A stretch of DNA of 62,807 nt, filler included, from Platydemus manokwari (taxonomy: Eukaryota): assembly GCA_037951405.1 (NCBI GenBank). It is 5 parts of 5 records of this genome, joined end to end, with 100 filler letters (N's around TTAATTAATTAA, not from the genome) between each part and the next. Parts side by side here need not be neighbours in the genome. Positions count along the whole stretch, not along the records: positions 12,184 to 25,038 come from JBBMOY011940271.1; 4 more parts are not named here. One strand, written 5' to 3'. The position numbers and the translations under genes are program-made. The first letter of the stretch is position 1; each line of letters starts with the position of its first letter. The notes under the pieces were generated by a model, which saw nothing but the letters and a program-made list of their open reading frames with translations, was not told the origin of the DNA and ran no database searches. Below, one piece after another: positions 12,184-25,038 of the stretch.

Positions 12184-13479
12184 AATAGGAATAATCGATA
12201 ATAATCATCGAAAATAAAGAAAAATTGTTCATAAAAACACTAAGTATCTGAATACCTTATATTCATCATTATTATGATTGGATGAAATAAGTCCACATCT
12301 TATATATTAATCGATGTAAACCATTAATACAGAATCAGGTGACCTGAAGAGCCCTCTGAAAGATGTAGCTATTCAATCAATATTTGAACGATTTATCGCA
12401 ATTGCAAATAAAGATTATTTAAAAACTCAATTGCTTCTCTATAAATCATTGGTCGGAAGTTAACATAAAGACGTTGATGTGATGGGAATACACACGATAT
12501 AAAGAATGTAATACAAAAAAATCTTGGAGAGTTTTTGTTGGAAAATTAAATGAAAAACTTTTTGACCGATAATACAATGAAAAATCATTAAAGAAAAATC
12601 GTTATATCGATTTTGTTTTCTATATAGCATTCAACATTGACATTTTAATCGTTTTTCTTAACAATATAAAAGTGAGTGTGGAGAGCCCGAAATTTCATTA
12701 AAAGTTCCCAATTATATTTTGACATTTAAAGTATTGATTTTGATGATGATTGCAAAGATGATCACCAGATGCAAATGTGGAAATACTTCGGAATTAATAA
12801 CCAAATAATCTTAATCAATATTTTAAAATGTACTCGTAAAATGTTGAGTTTGAAAACCGGTAAATATAAGGTCACCATTCAAAAATTATCCGTGAGCAAG
12901 AAAAATGGTTATTACTTACAAGAATAAGTTCAATATCCAATGGGTTGTCAGTCTCATTCATTTCAATTAAACAAGTATCTTTCCCGTGATTTTATGGAAC
13001 ATCGTACCAGAGTCAATCCCGGTTAAATATTTATGTGAAAACACTTTCGGTATTTATCATACAGTTGGTTAGTTGCCGAAATTTCTTCATTATTGATATT
13101 CAAATCAAAAGTCATGTTTACAACGGAACAAAAAATCTATTCGTCAATACATCAATTTTTAAACAAAATTTAAACAATAAATTTAAATTTATTTCCATCT
13201 GATTTGTCTTCACTTTTAATTCAAAATAAAAATGTCCACGTTTTTATATTACATCTTATTTTATTAAAAGATTTAAATTTTTGTTTAATGATTTTATTAA
13301 TTTAAAAACTGAGAGGTTGACAGTATTTTTTAATCGAGATCATTTTATAAATATTAATATCGTGTATTTATTTTTATTAAAAAAATTTCAAAAACATCTT
13401 TTAACTTAAATTTTTATAATTTTAATCTCAAGCAAATTTTAATTGTTTATCGCATTTTTAAATAAACTTCACACTATTA

Positions 13480-14930
13480 TTGTTGTCATTAAACAATGTT
13501 ATTGTAGCCTGTTGTTTGTAACCAGAAAAGCGATTAATATTTCTGATGATATCCAGTCACAAATCAACTAACTTTATTGATTTGAGATTGTTTTATAATA
13601 ATATAAAAACGATTTGTGGAAAATATCACGAACGAGATCGAAAGATATTTCTTATTGAGTTTGATCCATTTGTGATTGGATAATAGCATAGCGATCAATG
13701 TTCAACGAGTTACTGAAATCTCATGTTGAAATGAGAATAATTGTCGCTGACATGTAAACCAGAATCACTAAGTATTTTTACAAAAATATAATCAATTCGA
13801 CCAGCTCATTACCTTCAAATATCTTAAATGAGAACGGAAATGTGATCGCATAATTCATCTCAGACCCGTTTTGATATGAATCCATAATAAATCAATAAGT
13901 ATCAAATCAGTATGAATAAAATATAAAAATATTGATAGTAAAAATTATCGAAACATATCGACAATGTTTTAAATTGGCAGCAACAATTTGATACAAGTTT
14001 GGTAAATGAGGTAAATTATATTCAATCAGTTCGTTTTCCCGTGGCGATACTAGTTGGTTTAATAATTGTGGATTGTCGAAATTTCTCAATTGAAAATGTT
14101 AATTTTTAGTTTGGACAAAAATTTGGTGGAAAATTTCATCGATAATGGGAATCGATGGCGAATTTCAGTAAATTTCTACGATTATTTCATGACAGATAAA
14201 TAATCGATGATAGCATTTGATGACGATTTTTTTTCTGACAGAATATATACTGATAAGTATATTTCATAATTCCATCAACGATCATAATCTTCGGGAAGGG
14301 CTTCAATAATAATATTCATTGATTTCTTTCATTAAAAATGATACTTTGGTAATTTGATTTCTCATTGAATTCGATTCCAATTTCGTTCTGGTTCCAGTCG
14401 GATTACAGGCAAAATATAATTGACATATTTCCTGTGAATCAATCGATTTGCATGTTGTTGTCTGATTTGCGTTGAATGTCACAGACACGGTCAATGTTTT
14501 ATGTGAATTAATTCCGAAATTGATATCAATAATTGATAAATCAATACATCACTGCGTTACCAAGGTGATTATTCATTGGAAACCATTTGACACACAAAAA
14601 ACATTCAAAATCAAGAGGAAAATTCGAAAAATTCAATGCGGCAATTTGTTTTTATCGAGAATTTTTTTTTATTGGGAAGCATAATTTTCAAAGAATGTTT
14701 ATTCTTGTGTGGGAAATAAAATCGGACCGGAATGGAAGATTTGAAAAGACTTATCGGTGAACATTGTGTTGATTAATAGACACATATTTATACGAGTGTT
14801 GGGCGGGTCACACATCGGTAAGGAATTTATCGCCCTTATCAGAACATGTCGCCTGCAAAAATGTTTACAAATTTTCAAAAGCTTCTGCAAAAATTCTAAA
14901 CGAGACAATTTTTTGTTTAAATTAGTGTGA
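13480..14930 (-). pseudogene. Decayed coding region of unknown family
   Basis: Successive 60-70 aa minus-strand ORF pieces (14699-14908, 14303-14494, 13907-14089) with protein-like composition, broken by stops and frameshifts. No family recognised. Confidence 0.3.
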
Positions 14931-17479
14931 GAGAAGGCAGTTGAGATAAAAACAAATAAATTTCAATATAAATAATCGATCACAGATTTTGATTTTATTC
15001 ACGATTTTTGGCTTTACTAGTATTTCTAGAAATATAAATAAATTTATATCAATTATTATTTATATAAATTCAAACATCTGGATTGTGTTGTATATCATTT
15101 GATGTGAGGAATATTTAGTCCAGTGGAGACTACTGAATACATTATTCTCGAATTAATATTGCCGCTGACATTGTTGTATCATATTAAGTCTAAATATAAA
15201 GTAATTTCTGACACTATCCGAGAATTACAAGACTTTATATCTAATAATAATAATTTATTATCATAATATTATTATTATTTGTTGAAAATGACTAAATATT
15301 TATAATTTTATTTACACATTTAAATCAATATTTAAATAAATTTTCAATCAATAAACGAATTTTATATTGGCTTTATAATTCAACAAAAGTCCTTAAATAA
15401 CACTCGCAATAATATCTTTGAGGCTAAGATAATAACCATTGATAAACACCCCATTCACAATGTCTAACAAGGTTATCAGAAATGTAATTGTATTGATTTT
15501 TTTTGAAAAACTTTGGACCAATCAATTAATTTCAATTCTAGGAAGTCGTATTGCGTAAGAAACAACCGCGTGAGATATTCGGTCTTACTCTATCATATAG
15601 TGCTTTGTCCGCTAGCGATAATTCAGAATCAGAGGTTTATATCAGTGCAGTAAGTTGTGATTTCATTTTAAAATAAAAAAACGATCCAAATTAAACCGGC
15701 TGATCCTGTTACAGATGTATCAGTGAACGTCGATATTTATCCAATCTAACACTGGCCAGTATTATTCATTAGTTTACACACAGTGACACATACATACAGA
15801 GATACACACAGACATCATATAACTTTATGCATTAGTGATATAAAGTTGTTAGACACCTGGTCCAATTATCCGTGCACTTGATATGTCGATTGTAGCCCTG
15901 CACAAAAGTCTCGTGTATCCAAATAGACAAGCGAAATCAGAAAATCGCCCCTCAATATCAGGCCGCGATCACGAAAAATATTTTTTTATTTGGATATAGT
16001 TTTATATCAGATTTCTTTCTTGATAAACGGTTGAGGAGAGCGACATAGCAGTGAATCTCGCCCAACATTGAAATAATGCGCGCGTTTTTTGTCTGTGTTG
16101 ATTGATGTTTTTAAATATCATCAATGCATTGATCTTGAATGATTTCCTTGATAATAATTATCGATCTAATCTTGTGGCGCTGTTTGGAACGGAAAATCTA
16201 TAGTGAATTTTTCAAAAATCATTTGTGAAAACCCTACAATTTGGAATCAATAATATAAACAAATAATTTTGATTTCAAAGACAATAATCGATTAATGTTT
16301 ATTTTTTTATTATCGTGCAGATTTTTCTATTTTTTTACAAATGAAGTTTTCGTGGACTTATATTTTGCTGAGATTCGTAACCTCGATACTGGTGCGGAGG
16401 AACCAGAGAATTTTTTGTTTCCTTCAATTTATCAGTCTCTATTGGACAGCCGCCCCTGGGGCAGCTGATTAAGACTAATCATGACTTTAAGTTTCGATTG
16501 AGAGAAAACGATTACTGAAAATCTCGTCAATTGTACTGGATTGCGAATTAGCTGCTAAGGGAATCGAATTTGCATCAGATGAAATTTTTCGTTATATTTT
16601 TGCAAAAGAATTAACTCAAACATGGCTATTTTTTTTCTTGTTTAACAAATGTTCAAAGCCTTCATGAAAATTTGATAACAGATGAATAACAGGAACATTG
16701 ATCGGTTTGAATTAATTGCTCCAGTTCGGTGATGGGAGTCACATTTCATCTGGTTGCATCTGTTGAAATATATCAGCAATTTTGGTTACATTCGATACCA
16801 GCTCTACCCACTTCGTACTCCCTCTTGGATTTCTGTTTGTTTACTTTCTTAATTACTAATCTATTGTCAATGGATTTTCATGACAATATCGTAACGAATG
16901 GAAAATCTCATTAAAATTAGTTTTTTGTGATTGGTTTTATCAATCATTTTGAGTCAACGACGGAACAATAATATTCGTCATCAATCGCTATTGTTGAGCT
17001 CGCTTATATTTACAATAACCCAATAAAATAAAAATGTAATTGATTGATCAATATATGAGATGTGATAAAATACATCAATTCATTTGGGCAACGATTTTTT
17101 ATATTTATCATAGAATTTTTCTGCATTTTTGCAGTCATGGAAACCAAACCAAGCGAATATTTTTAGTGTTTTGGACCAATAGAATCATTCTTATTTTGTT
17201 AGTAATGATAATAGAGAAGTCTAAAATCTTATTATTTGTCGGGATAATCGATAGTTTAATAAATTTTGGGAAATATTTTATTAGTAGATGGATTCAGTTT
17301 AAAATTCGAGTTAATTTATTTTATAAAATACTAATGCCATGCTATCAATGGGAACTTTGCTCAATGTCGTTCACTTGAAACCAATTTTTAAGATATTTCG
17401 AGTATATGAGTCATGGTAATGAACCCGAAAAGATATTCTACTTCAAACTTTAATCTCCATAAAAGTAAAATCAATACAC

Positions 17480-18156
17480 CAGACATAAAATCGCCATCAT
17501 AAAATCTTTCAAAGTCAGCAATAACTTGTCAATATGGGGTACGAACGGCTATTTTATTGACACGATATCCGATGAATATTTCCAACAATTTCATACACTG
17601 ACTAATTTGGGATGAACCTCATAGGTTTGATTGACAGATTTATCTTGAGCCGGTGTCATGCAAATGAATCATTTAAGCCACATCAGAATTAAAAAATACA
17701 CACGAACGTCAAACGGTTTATTAAAATAGGAAATAATATTCATTCATTGACAGGACATGTCGACTGCTCGATCCGAATCGACATATCCAAATAATTATAA
17801 GCTAGTGAACATTATCAATACAATTTAACAATAAATCTGATCAACAAGCAGAATTTTATCCATGGTAACAATAACTAGACTCTTTCAGACATTAATTCCA
17901 CTAAAATAATGATATACACGACGGATAAATAAATCGATTTAAAAAATGCCAACAGCAACCTCATACCGGATATTAATTTTATGTTGCTATGTAGATCGAG
18001 CCAAACAGTGTTGCGAAAAAAGAGCCCAATATTCATCTTGGAGACCAGATTTTACAGATCAATAACGTTGATGTTCATTCAAAAGCTCAAGTTGTTTCAT
18101 TGTTTCAAAAATGCGGTCTGGAGGTTCGGTTACTGCTGGGACGTCCAAATATCATT
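17480..18156 (+). pseudogene. PDZ-domain gene fragment (PDZRN3/PDZRN4/PDZD4-like), probably decayed
   Basis: Clean 162-nt exon 17995-18156 (tag|...|gtgagt) encoding IEPNSVAKKEPNIHLGDQILQINNVDVHSKAQVVSLFQKCGLEVRLLLGRPNII. This resembles the PDZRN3-type PDZ ([33 protein letters not shown]). Upstream PDZ-like sequence (LSIWGTNGYFIDTISDE; DINSTKIMIYTTD) is frameshifted and lacks a GT donor. Confidence 0.6.
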
Positions 18157-21100
18157 GTGAGTGGAATTTTTGTTTGAATTTATTAGAAATTATTAATATT
18201 TCTGTCATGAAAAATATATTTAAACGATGACAATGGACCAAATAATCATTGTAATCATTAATATGGATTATCAAGTTTAACTCGTTATTAATATTGATGA
18301 AAAATGATTAACAAATTGGACATGAAGTGAATGAAATATATATCATTGGAAATTTTGAATAAATTATCGATTGACGGGCTAACTTATTGTTTTATCCAAA
18401 CTGAATGCCACAATCATCACAACCAAAATTGATCATTAATAAAATAAATTGCAATCAATCGATAAATCAAATTTTATTGTCATAATTTTTAAAATTTATC
18501 TTTCTTAAGTGATGATATATAATCATGTATCATACTGATAATATTAATAATAATAATAAACAATTATAATAATAATTTATATGATTTATAATAAATAATT
18601 ATAATTATTCGCTGTCATTATTTTTATAAATAAAATTTTTAATTTTTTGAGTGTTTTGCAAAATTCTATATAGTTTATTTAATTATATTCTTTAAAAACA
18701 TTTTGAATTTTTTATTTAATTATTTAAGAAATCAAGTAAATAAATAAATACACCAAACTTTAAAATCTACTAAAATTTTATTATTTGAAAAATGGATAAA
18801 AGTAGGTCGAATTGCAATTTATTGAAAATTAGCGAGGACCCCTTTTTAACATTAGAAGCAAATTGAGAGATAATATCAATTTTTACAATTATTTTATAAA
18901 AATAAGCAATGATATTATTAAACATGTCTGTAATTAACTAACTCGAGTTATAATTATAAAAATTTAGATTTAAAAACTCAAATAATCATATAGAAATGTT
19001 GTGATTAGAATGGGAACTTGGTTTTAAAACTATGTTTTGTCAATATTAGATATCTTTAAAAATGAGATATTAACTGAATTATACGAATAAATCAAACATT
19101 ACAATTATATATAAAATAAATTTATAAAATTATGTCATGCGCGAAAATTCATTATAACAAAAGTATGTCAAAGGACCCTTTTTCTTAACTTAATCCCAAT
19201 TTTCAAAACATCAATTTAAATTGAAAATCAAAATTTAAACAACTTATCTAAAACCAGAGCATATTTCTAAATTTTAAAACACATTTAATTTATAAAATAT
19301 AAAAAATTTATAGTATTATAACTATTTTTATCCAATAAAATTATTTATCCAAATAAATTCTCATTAAATATTTTTCTGCTGTAGTTTCGAATTTTGATTT
19401 TAAAATCTTAACACATGGAATTGATAAAATTAATAGTATGAATGATACTGAGACCATCCCAATTGAATCGCTATTATAATCTTACTATGGTAAACTTCTA
19501 CAAGCCCCGATTAAAATTAATTTTATTTCATTAAAATTTATCTCGTTACTAAAAGTAAAATGCTTTATATTTTCATTTTTATCCCACAGAAAAGTCTTTG
19601 AATAATTTTAGATAAATGTCCTTCAAAAAAAACTTAACTGATAATAAATCTTTCATCTAATGAATTAACCGTTAAACCGGGTGACAATGAACTGACAAAT
19701 TGTCTAAAATTGGACTAAGGGAAAAAATCCCATTGAACACTATTATGCAAAAATAATTGATTCGTTCCGTAGTTTATTAATTTTTACTGATATTCAATAA
19801 ATTAAGGAAAATGCATTCCAAATCATTATCAGCTTGATCATTATCGAAATTTAGTTATTTCAATTAAATGCCCTATCAAACTCTTTCATAAATTCAGCTA
19901 TGATATTATAATTTATCACAAATTGGAGTTGAAGATATATTTGTAATGAAATGAGTTTTCCTCGACATTATAGAATAATAAAGTTATAACTAGATATCGA
20001 ATTGTGATATAAAATAAAATCTATCTCACTGTGAATATTATCCTATTAAATTAATATTTTATTCATGTAATCGTTATATTATAATAATATTTTTTTCCTT
20101 ATCTTTGTTGAGACTTTTATTAAATTAATTTTTACAAATTAATATCTTATTGGTCTTTCTTTTGTCCTTATTTTACGGGATTAATAAATTTCTTAGCATT
20201 ATAATTGCCACGGTAACTAAAATAAAAGATAAATATTTTGTAAGTAATTTTAGAGAAACTAATCAAAATATAATAATCGAGGTCTTAAAAAATAATTGAT
20301 TTCCGATGATACCACTATTTTTTCAAGAAGTTTATAATAAAAAGTTCGTTTGAAAATGTTTTGTCATTGATAAGGTTTTGTTAGGTGAATTGGATACTTT
20401 GAACTTTCTCAATATTTGCTATAGTCACTCAATATTGGGTTTCATTCCAGTTTTTAATCAAATTAATTTTAGATGAACTACGAAGCTACTTTTTCGAAGA
20501 TTTGGAATAATCAATCATTTTTACTTAATCGATTATCGGACCTGAGATTGCTGGAAAATATTGATCTGCTATGTATAAAGAAACAATGCAGTTAATCTTC
20601 TTATCCAGAACTTTCTATGCTTGATGTATGGAAGATGCCTCAGCATCTGTCATAGGCAAGTAAGCAATAAAGTTGAAATAGAATATTTTTCTGTCGCTGA
20701 TTCCAAAGTAATATTTGAATAAAAATGATGACAAAAATAAAGTTATTGTAAAACATATATTTATTTATATAAATGGTAACTATAGTATCGATAGATGCTG
20801 CACGCCATTAACTTAGTTAACATAAAGCCAGGAAAGTTACATAATATTCACAAAAAAAATTTTATGGAGATGTTTTGCATTGTCAACAAACTAGTTCAAT
20901 TTTCGCAATTCAAGATCAATAAACGAAGCAACTCGGTATTCACCGCTTTATCGCATATATCTAATATATACGTATTCACTCATCAACTTAGAATTTCTAT
21001 CACCAACATCATAATTAATGAATGAAAAAGATTATGAAACCACAATGAAAAAACGAATGAAGGAAAATATATTAACATGTGCAATTGAATTTGAAGTTTA

Positions 21101-23067
21101 AACCAGTTACCACAATAAGAAGGCATAAAATCGCAGAATTAAGATAGTAGATGAAGTAAGAGGCCATACGAAGTTGTAAAAGTATCTGACACTAATTTGT
21201 TCAGTGGTTCACATAAACAGGTGCAAAAGGTAGAATAAGAGCAACCAATCGTTAATAAGAAAAATAAACCTTAAGAAAACAGCAAGCCACACACAAAAAT
21301 ATGTTCTAAACATAAATACAAAAGGGAAGGACAGTAAAGAAAATTATAAAATGAAAGCACGAAAGATGTTAACCAAGATAATCCAAGTAATAATTGTATG
21401 TGCAATAATTAGTTTACTAATAAATCTAAAAGGCGTACAAAATCATATCATTCAGGAAGAATAAGTTCTAAGAATAATAACCAAAGTAAAGTAAATGTAC
21501 CAGTAATCAGTAGGCCTGTAGAAACAGTAAAGAAAATCACAACTACAATAGCAATATTGACAAAGGAGACATCGTACATCACATAAACATCTCAACCAAC
21601 TGTGAAATCGTATATCAAAGAAAGTCAAGAATACATATAGAAAGTAATAAATCAAAATTAGAATTACAACATGAGTGGAATTAGAGGAAATTGATAGATA
21701 TAATACAATTAAAAAATAAAAGAAAAATAGTAGAGATCATTATATAGGAATGTGTAAGAAATTATAAGCGAGAGAAGTTACAATTCATAACTATAGTATG
21801 AAAATGGGAAAAAAGACATCAACAATATCTAATTTTATATAAATAATAATGTATATTTTTTACACAATTAATCGTCATTTACAAACATTGATCAATTCTT
21901 TACAAATAATTAATCGTTCGTAAGATAATCGCAAGATAAATATGAAGGTCAAAATCAAGAGTCAAAAATTGTATGTCAAATATTCATAAGTCAAATTTTT
22001 ACAAATGTTTGATAGTAGATATGCAGATCAAATGAATATTGGGTGGATTTGGAGATTTTGGGATCGTAGATTTTGCGGATCGAATGAATGTTTGGATTGA
22101 AACAGAATCACCAGTATTTATTTGAATCTTCCATTGACCTCAAACTTCTAAACCCATATTCCAGTTCTTCTTTCCTCGCGTTTTCCACTGTCGTTTGAAA
22201 TGTGGGTCACTATCAGCTTCTTGAGCACTGCCTCTTTTTGACACTGTTTATTTATGGTTTGAGATACTTGTGGTGTTATTTGTGCCGTTTGGGATTGAGA
22301 TATTTGATGTATTATTTCTGTTGGTTGAGATTGGAATGCTATTTGTAGGAGTTTTATATTGGTTGTTTTACTCTTTCATGCACCTTATCAGCTGATGGTG
22401 ATGGAAATCTTTTCATCTTCGCTCTCCTCATTATCTAAGTAGAGCACTAACCGGTCTATGGTTTTCCAGCAATATAATATAACTCGTTTGACTGATAACA
22501 CAAGAGAAATGACAAGAGTAAATTGCTTAAACCTATAAAGTTTGCAATAAAACCATCAATAACCTATATACATCAAATATTATTTAATTTAAACTTGAGA
22601 ATATACTAATAATTTCAGGTACCATTTCAAATGACCTTTATATATCATATGTTTTCAGGTGGATTTAAATACATTCCAAATGGAATTTGAAATCTAGTAG
22701 AAATATACTTTTAAATAAACTGAACGAAAATATAATTAAACAGCCTATTAATTGTCAAATATTTACAACTGCAGTTGTTGGATTAACTGGCAAAAAAATA
22801 CTCCACATATCAACGTATATCCTTCTGTGATCTAAAAGTCTCTAATAAATATTTATTATTATAAATAGCCAATTTATTTCATTAATTTTAAAATATAAAT
22901 CTTCTTACTAATTTATTGTTTTCTATAATTCATAAAGAATATTTTTTTACCATTAATAAAGTTTTCAAATAAAAAATCAATAGATTTTCCAAACACATTC
23001 CTAAAATTCTAGTCCCAATTCGAGTGATATATATTTTTTGCCTTTCATCTATTGATTATTTTTTCTA

Positions 23068-24766
23068 TTATTTTCCTATAATATAATCTAACACTTTCAC
23101 TTTTTTAAGTGTTTTCAATAAATATTCCATTTCATGGCGACGATAATCAGACATTTGGGAATTCGATGTACTGGTTTTAGATGATTTGCTCTCAGAAGAA
23201 GAATCAATTGATTTCGTGAGATCTATTGCTGGATTATTAGTATTCAAATTGAAATCCGATGTCGTATTTTTCATGAGATTTACTGAATTATTTATTTTGT
23301 TTTTTATCGATTTACTTTTATCGGATTCATTTTCCTTATCCAATCGATTATCACCCATGTCTTGATAATCGACTTTCAATTTCAAGATTTTATTCTTTAT
23401 CTCTTCAAATTCCAATTCTTCCATTCCTTCTTCAACATACCAATGAATGAATGATTTTTTCCGATATAAACAATCGAATTTTGTATTGATTCGACTCCAT
23501 ACTTGTTCGATAGCTGATGAATTACAAAACATGGTACAGTTCTTATTTGAAAGCGCCAATTCCTTTCCAATAGCCGACGGTGGCATTGAACTGATACCAA
23601 CTTTAAAACCCGTTGGACACCAATCCACGAATTGGATGTTCTTTTTTTGTTTAATTTCCTGCAACGCTCCATTGATTTCTGTGGGAAGCACCAAGCCACG
23701 GTATTGCAAACAACAAGCCATATATTTGCCATCGTTGGTATTGCATTTGATCAATTGATTACCGGGATCAAACAGATCATGAGTGATATTAATTGTCGTT
23801 ATATTATCATGATCGACTTTCACCTGGTCGGACATGGGTGAAAAATTAATGAATGGAAAATGCAATCGGGGATATGGAACCAAATTCGTTTGCAAATGTG
23901 TCAAATCATGATCGAGCGATGAACCGAATCGAAGAGTAACCGTTAATGAACTCAATATTTGTGATACAAGTCGATTGACATTGGTATATGTTGGTCGATA
24001 GACATTCATTTTACTAAAACAACCCTCAAACATGGCTTCATTGTCAAATAACAATGCCAAATCGATTATTTCGATGGACGTTATAGCGGATAGGATACAG
24101 TTATACGGTTCGACAACAGCTGTCGATATGTGTGGAGATGGGAAAATTATTGCGCCGACTTTGGTATTTTTGGGAAATTCATTACTCATATAATCGAGAG
24201 CCAAATTGGAAAACCCTGAACCGGTGCCACCACCATAACTATTAACAATCACAAATCCATGAAGACAATCACAGTTACGAATCAGTTTAGTCAATTGAGC
24301 TATAAAATCATCGATTTTTCGTTTACCAATGGAAAAATAACCGCGAGCAAAATTATTTGAAGCATCTTCAATGCCACTCATTAACATATCAGGATGCCAT
24401 AAATTCCTATATGGTCCAGACCGTATTTCATCTACAAGATAATCCATATTCATCAATTTGAATTGAAGTGAAAAATTTATAACCAATAACAGTTGGTTCG
24501 AGATCTAAATTAATTGATCTCGGAGTGAATTTGTATGGTTTGGTTTCTTGGAAAATAGTATGTAGGCCAGTGAAAAAATCATCTTTATTATGAAGACTTT
24601 CAGTTCGACTTTGACCACAACAATCTAAGCCGTGTTCTACACAAAATAATTCCCAAACAGCATCACTTATTTGACAACCAGCTTGACCAAAATTTAAGCA
24701 GATTATTTCTTTCTGAACAACAGAGTTTTAAAGGAATTACTCTCAAAGATATATTATTACTATCAT
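23068..24766 (-). CDS. Divergent alpha-tubulin, 532 aa, 3 exons: complement(24761-24766, 24484-24712, 23068-24431)
   Basis: Spliced protein [108 protein letters not shown]. Introns of 48 and 52 nt are GT-AG and lie just after the start codon and within the D76 codon, as in many animal alpha-tubulins. Total length 1599 nt is in frame. The alpha-specific S9-S10 loop insertion is present. Confidence 0.95.
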
Positions 24767-25038
24767 ATTAGATATTAGATATTAAAGTCTTTGTGGATTT
24801 CAATAAATCTATATTCATTCTATTGATTATTATTTTACCAACGCGACTTAAATATTAAATTCAATTGAAAAAAATATAACAGTATTGAAGGGAAATAGAT
24901 AATTATAAGTTAATTTTTCTCATAGAAGGCACTTAAATAAAATAATAATTATTAAAAATGATATGCATTGACGAATTCATGAGAAATTACATTATAACTA
25001 GTTTTATAAATTCTCTTATTAGAATGATAAAACAAATT

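Follow-up and report, generated by a model that had tools for sequence, protein, structure and literature searches.

The window (the whole stretch of DNA analysed here, 62,807 nucleotides of Platydemus manokwari sequence joined from five parts) carries in its piece 12184-25038 a minus-strand alpha-tubulin gene, read by translation as the exons 24712-24484 and 24431-23068 with one intron between them (Table 1). Spliced together, these exons form an in-frame sequence of 1593 nt that codes for 530 residues, and the 531-codon frame runs without a stop or frameshift through DNA of 28% GC. The surrounding piece is AT-rich (GC 0.20-0.36) and nearly devoid of long open frames other than the one on the minus strand at 23068-24504, the others rarely exceeding 100 codons. 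That the gene is intact, as the first-pass annotation had claimed, is borne out by a frame that stays open from 24712 to its TAA and by a 52-nt intron whose removal restores the frame.

Looking at the start of the gene, the exon at 24712 opens directly at an acceptor site (ttgttcag adjoining AAA GAA, Lys2-Glu3, at 24713/24712), so the Met codon should lie on a small upstream exon; no in-frame ATG was found upstream in the open reading frame that runs through 24712. We infer a start at the candidate ATGATA, which would give M-I-K-E-I-I, while a first exon beyond the edge of the piece is also possible. The N-terminus reads KEII, or (M/I)KEI after the candidate Met, in place of the canonical MREC. 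The related protein P0074 reads ..FQKEII at this point, as if reading through the same acceptor that precedes Lys2 in the window.

Table 1. Features of the alpha-tubulin gene and of the neighbouring sequence, in positions of the window.
Feature	Position	Strand	Basis or remark
Candidate first exon, ATGATA (Met-Ile)	24766-24761	-	Sole ATG followed by a GT donor (GTAATA) in the ~100 nt before the acceptor
Candidate intron 1, 48 nt, GT..AG	24760-24713	-	Read from the sequence
Exon, residues 2-77, ending LEPTVI, phase 1	24712-24484	-	Translation; Pfam Tubulin, E = 5.3e-11
Intron, 52 nt, GT..AG, phase 1, before DEIR	24483-24432	-	Splicing restores the frame
Large exon: remaining GTPase domain, Tubulin_C, long C-terminal tail, TAA	24431-23068	-	478-codon open frame
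T4 signature GGGTGSG, intact	24234-24214	-	Same in all aligned clade members
Remodelled T7 loop and start of helix H8, RFGSSLDHDLTHLQTN for canonical RFDGALNVDLTEFQTN	23884-23931	-	Translation
Retained D251, GAT	23907-23905	-	
CAT (His) in place of the catalytic Glu254 codon	23898-23896	-	Sequence and alignment
C-terminal tail, 98 residues after the DY of H12, net charge +3, 35 Ser/Thr/Asn	23364-23071	-	Translation
Conserved motif RRHEMEYLLKTLK near the C-terminus	23104-23142	-	Aligns with RRNEIRHLLKTLK of P0009
Stop codon TAA	23070-23068	-	
Candidate polyadenylation signal AATAAA	22912-22917	-	~150 nt past the stop; putative, read from the sequence
Tandem repeat of 36 bp, 2.1 copies, 76% matches	22259-22333		~0.7 kb past the tubulin stop
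Strong excess of A over T, AT skew 0.23-0.27	20684-22183	+	Otherwise unskewed DNA
60-codon open frame matching PDZ (PF00595)	17995-18174	+	E = 2e-06

Outside the gene, the plus-strand PDZ match probably belongs to an exon of an adjacent gene on the same strand, and among ten other open frames of the piece Pfam recognised the PDZ fragment only. The skewed tract and the short tandem repeat are further features of the piece (Table 1).

Evaluating the identity of the encoded protein, we found the Pfam domains PF00091 Tubulin (8e-30 in the large exon, with a further match in the exon before it) and PF03953 Tubulin_C (2.5e-36). Alpha chains made up 60 of the 60 solved-structure matches listed, the best at E ~1e-127 and ~55% identical from residue 77 to 447; the alpha-specific S9-S10 insertion (before S10) could be aligned in the protein as well. 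Phylogenetic trees placed it in a clade within metazoan alpha-tubulins, with beta-tubulins separate (support 100), and on these structure matches and trees a beta-tubulin or other tubulin class was rejected. Beta-tubulin carries Lys254 there, a residue without catalytic function that leaves the N-site GTP unhydrolysed, but the window protein is clearly alpha. With canonical metazoan alpha-tubulin (TUBA1B, PDB 3j8x chain A) the protein shares the fold, the domains, GGGTGSG, the N-site contacts checked and D251. At 18 positions that we take to be N-site GTP contacts (in the T1, T2, T3, T4, T5, N206, Y224 and N228 regions), all 18 residues are the same as in canonical alpha-tubulin. AlphaFold2, run on a 4-sequence alignment of the exon-3 product, gave an unusable model (mean pLDDT 36.8).

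The difference lies at the residue that makes microtubules dynamic. In alpha-tubulin, Glu254 triggers the GTP hydrolysis that drives dynamic instability, and mutants of this residue are the field's main mimic of the GTP cap. The window protein has His254 for Glu254 and a T7 loop of GSSLDH for DGALNV (D245G, G246S, A247S, N249D, V250H). Neither the catalytic Glu nor the T7 motif GxxNxD is present, the loop reading SSLDHD with G246 -> Ser and N249 -> Asp. These readings agree with the first-pass annotation, which had reported a CAT codon for His, a replaced T7 stretch and the retention of both the GGGTGSG loop and D251, all four of which we recovered on the minus strand (Table 1).

To assess whether this residue could be an error, we compared the gene with public sequencing runs and with its relatives. 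One run alone contains the stretch: its 5747-nt contig spans 22950-24850 with 0 differences at a depth of ~12, and because this contig retains the intron the run is DNA. An artefact of assembly or sequencing behind the CAT codon could draw on the fact that this single run may itself be the source data of the window assembly, which makes it weak as independent support; against that stand a separately built contig identical over the whole gene and, above all, the same residues in independent proteins of other species. The main support against a sequence error is in fact these relatives, which carry the same remodelled loop. We consider an artefact to be hardly credible, and the earlier argument that the change is no sequencing error holds; sequencing error at the His codon was rejected on the identical contig and the relatives alike. 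Other contigs of the same run (X1) match short conserved tubulin stretches at 23101-23133, 23408-23447 and 23594-23638 with 90-95% identity and then continue as unlike sequence. These partial matches are consistent with further tubulin paralogues in the organism.

The relatives came from several searches. A word search identified two UniParc proteins, P0009 and P0074, whose loop is the same, with His at 254; P0009 is 62% identical to the window protein overall and 67% in the core. A second word search limited to the T7 region returned 4 proteins only, 2 of them ordinary Glu254 tubulins. Dugesia ryukyuensis A7M6D9 (P0041) reads RFGSSLNHDLLQLQTN with Gln at 254, and a profile search added P0055 (Gln), P0142 (Gln), P0121 (Gln), P0122 (His) and P0091 (Gln, acidic tail). 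Four of these profile-search relatives come from one sample as short genomic contigs, two of which (L001, L002) have the phase-1 intron before DEIR, in position and phase as in the window gene. The remodelled T7/H8 motif is common to P0009, P0074, P0122, P0041, P0055 and P0121, and within the clade 56% of the T7/H8 columns are invariant compared to 36% overall. Two of the proteins, P0009 (residues 1-220) and P0142 (residues 1-163), have long non-tubulin N-terminal extensions that are probably fused neighbour genes or mis-predictions.

In the maximum-likelihood tree, the nine non-Glu proteins (the window protein included) form one clade (100/100) on a stem of 0.67 inside the animal alpha-tubulins. 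P0091 (Gln) branches first, followed by a Gln group of P0121 and then P0055, P0041 and P0142, with a sister His group composed of the window protein and P0009, which are sisters (support 100/99), and of P0074 and P0122. Parsimony on this tree suggests an ancestor with Gln at 254 and a single origin of His. The codons at this position are CAT in the window gene and CAC (His) or CAA, CAG and CAA (Gln) in the paralogues, and together with the branch order they indicate that the two-base change from Glu to His was made in two single steps, GAR -> CAR -> CAY. The two-base change that the first-pass annotation had used to argue against an error is real but arose stepwise, via Gln. In the same way, the proposal of a naturally evolved non-Glu isotype holds with respect to its conservation, together with a remodelled T7, in orthologues and paralogues and to its purifying selection, but the gene is no isolated isotype; it belongs to a multi-paralogue flatworm family. 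A published description of this flatworm non-Glu254 clade was not found in the literature searched, the coverage of which is incomplete.

How widely such proteins are spread depends on the depth of the search. In a first set of relatives, Glu was found at 254 in 159 of 169 tubulin domains, the only real exceptions being members of the clade itself, besides two mis-joined gene models. An exhaustive profile search, with position 254 scored in the aligned domains of the best 150 representatives, gave Glu in 105, Asp in 16, Gln in 11, Lys in 4 (beta-tubulins), Val in 3, Ala in 3 and other residues in 8. Among divergent alpha-like tubulins, Glu254 has thus been lost less rarely than had been assumed at the outset. 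Among them are proteins of Fasciolopsis buski (KAA0189647, Gln), Paragonimus westermani (KAF8569058, Ala) and Sparganum proliferum (BHF84084, Gln), and several further non-Glu254 matches are UniParc entries whose accessions belong to the series of P0009. Part of the clade's derived residues (Y103F, G246S, F255L, N356S) recurs in the fluke proteins, and a quick tree joins most of the divergent proteins to the planarian clade, though at moderate support (85-91) and on long branches. A flatworm-wide family, including the trematode and cestode proteins without E254, appears likely. Outside flatworms, ~700-residue proteins annotated 'tubulin alpha chain-like' in Penaeus monodon, vannamei, indicus and chinensis (the P0171 cluster) have Asp254 and read RFDGDLNVDLRDFKTNL, the same change as in the engineered slow-hydrolysis E254D. 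In the cestode Schistocephalus solidus, the gene model P0078 joins a canonical alpha-tubulin to the first part of a second, divergent tubulin-like domain (residues ~452-638), which suggests a tandem tubulin gene pair.

The loss of Glu254 is accompanied by changes elsewhere in the protein. Seventeen of 188 near-invariant canonical positions differ in every member of the core clade (G17, Y103, F138, F141, K164, H192, V235, G246, V250, E254, L269, S277, D322, K326, D327, N356 and A426), and 7 of these 17 fall in T7/H8, H10 and 345-356 (odds ratio 5, one-sided Fisher p = 0.005), regions that we take to be the face meeting the beta subunit of the next dimer; the enrichment is significant but indicative only. 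Shared derived residues present in the window protein are Y103F, F138x, F141Y/L, K164x, H192x, G246S, V250H/S, E254H/Q, D322L/A, K326R/T and N356S, and in H10 the protein differs from canonical alpha-tubulin by D322L, K326T and D327E. Several acidic residues of H12 are lost, and Lys40 is absent, position 40 aligning to Ser. The canonical tail of ~18 residues is strongly acidic and ends in EEY, whereas the tail of 98 residues here is non-acidic, rich in Ser, Asn and Lys, and ends in IIGK without a terminal EEY. Even so, this tail alone aligns to that of P0009 (E = 2e-05), the motif near its C-terminus included (Table 1).

Selection on the gene was evaluated against the four paralogues with available DNA, for which pS was 0.73-0.95 (saturated) and pN 0.29-0.34, and the one pair with a finite estimate gave a dN/dS of ~0.14. 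For the dN/dS check that had been proposed for this gene, these values show long-term purifying selection on the family; with dS saturated, the branch of the window gene alone may have relaxed recently. A simple pseudogene was rejected on the open frame, on a pN far below pS and on the conserved T7/H8. A related reading is a redundant duplicate that drifts towards a pseudogene and has no present function. Such drift would fit the long end branch of the window gene (0.40 changes per site), differences at 56 out of 194 positions where canonical alpha-tubulins do not vary, and the finding of the gene in no RNA run (the one public run that matches being DNA). It fits poorly with a 531-codon frame kept open in a piece where other frames rarely exceed 100 codons, with a branch of 0.36 for the orthologue P0009 that is about as long, with pN far under a saturated pS, and with the conservation of both the derived T7/H8 motif and the C-terminal motif. 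We regard drift as very improbable.

We instead interpret the gene as a functional, fast-evolving member of a flatworm family of divergent alpha-tubulins, with a probable loss of GAP activity, stable polymers and use in a particular tissue, a reading to which as a whole we give a probability of roughly 0.6. The sequence analysis itself establishes the integrity of the gene, its place in the family, its conservation and the order of the substitutions, while the loss of GAP activity, the polymer stability and the tissue are predictions. In the family Glu254 was replaced by Gln and then, in the branch of the window gene, by His, along with a re-optimised T7, changes in H10, an altered H12 surface, the loss of Lys40 and a long non-acidic tail. 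Given the intact N-site and core, from which dimerisation and polymerisation are inferred, the protein most likely pairs with beta-tubulin and enters the lattice. There it would trigger GTP hydrolysis on the beta subunit below either very slowly or not at all. The outcome would be intrinsically stable, GTP-like microtubules with altered binding partners, probably in male germ cells.

Engineered human tubulins give the closest biochemical comparison. The E254A mutant does not hydrolyse GTP; it is a strong nucleator and gives stable GTP microtubules (PMC7018511). E254D is a slow hydrolyser with hardly any catastrophes (PMC7018511), and E254N is also hydrolysis-deficient (PMC7018511, PMC11893814). 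E254Q, called 'the smallest possible modification', is likewise hydrolysis-deficient with stable GTP microtubules (PMC11893814), and Gln is the very residue found in the sister paralogues and reconstructed for the ancestor of the window gene. The first-pass annotation's reading of a GAP-dead protein is strengthened to this extent, in that the E254Q state of the sister paralogues is deficient in human tubulin (PMC11893814), and by analogy the window protein probably builds very stable microtubules. The engineered mutants, however, carry one substitution in a canonical protein, while the natural flatworm proteins have a co-evolved loop, H10, H12 and tail.

Weighing against a complete loss of GAP activity, His can act as a general base, and some activity may remain with D251 retained. 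The window protein might on this account be GTPase-competent but tuned (slower or pH-dependent), the step from Gln to His having partly restored an activity that was lost in the Gln ancestor. His is derived from Gln and is kept in two paralogue lineages with the synonymous codons CAT and CAC, which suggests selection for His itself, and E254D shows that intermediate hydrolysis rates are possible (PMC7018511). The remaining T7 loop is altered as well, however; the E254 variants assayed in the cited work are A, D, N and Q; and Gln and His paralogues coexist in one sample, such that the loss of catalysis is clearly tolerated in the family. On balance we think such a tuned activity unlikely.

A further departure from hydrolysis-deficient microtubules would be that the protein enters no ordinary lattice at all and acts as a cap, a template or a non-canonical polymer, e.g., in a flatworm sperm-specific structure missed by standard anti-tubulin antibodies. 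The interdimer face, the M-loop, H12 and the tail have each diverged strongly, and with Lys40 and the terminal EEY absent the usual antibody epitopes, and many contacts to MAPs and motors, would presumably be lost in the window protein. The N-site residues, T4, T5, His283 and most of the core are nonetheless as in alpha-tubulins that polymerise, and we place this possibility below that of a tuned GTPase, as rather improbable.

For the tissue in which a stable, GTP-like microtubule might be used, the best lead comes from another planarian. In D. ryukyuensis, the testis expresses two alpha-tubulin transcripts, TR27538 and TR45012, that rank with the most strongly sexual-specific genes (PMC6467871). 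Their published primers translate to RGHFTV and (S)WQRL, peptides found in 4 (RGHFTV) and 7 (WQRL) of the 310 proteins compared, all of them without Glu254. Searched against the contigs L001-L004, the D. ryukyuensis primers gave no match within 3 mismatches save in one generally conserved stretch. The translated primers suggest indirectly, through six-residue peptides of other paralogues in another species, that the testis-specific planarian alpha-tubulins belong to the divergent assemblage.

The closest published case lies far from the animals. Coccidian alpha3-tubulin (Toxoplasma TGME49_231400, with homologues in Hammondia, Neospora, Besnoitia and Cystoisospora) has D251 -> Thr and E254 -> Gln/His, together with a very long tail at the C-terminus and a changed N-terminal regulatory motif (PMC10056924), and is proposed to serve in non-dynamic microtubules, possibly in sexual stages, with GAP activity that is weak or missing (PMC10056924). 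The flatworm proteins share with it the non-Glu254 residue (Gln/His), the long tail and the altered N-terminus, but the flatworm clade keeps D251, so that the double loss of D251 and E254 is not seen, and it has many paralogues. Because the flatworm clade lies inside the animal alpha-tubulins, the resemblance is most likely convergent, with alpha3 compared here by its description. Naturally occurring, long-tailed alpha-tubulins without the GAP residue are thus already known from coccidians (PMC10056924), and the flatworm family parallels them, apparently independently.

Extended to the phylum, one may speculate that triclads, trematodes and cestodes possess multiple paralogues of hydrolysis-deficient alpha-tubulins that build permanently GTP-state, antibody-invisible microtubule-like structures of the sperm (e.g., the rows of cortical microtubules or the unusual central element of the 9+'1' axoneme), with the Gln-to-His step as a further tuning, a proposal that we put forward as a doubtful one. 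What the family would offer at a more immediate level is a natural experiment: a conserved animal family that has long been without Glu254, in which tubulin itself, and not MAPs or modifications, could make microtubules non-dynamic. Some of its members carry exactly the engineered E254Q change, and the family displays the changes that accompany the loss of Glu254 in the T7 loop, H10, H12 and the tail. In parasitic flatworms, these divergent tubulins may matter for reproduction and for differences in drug binding.
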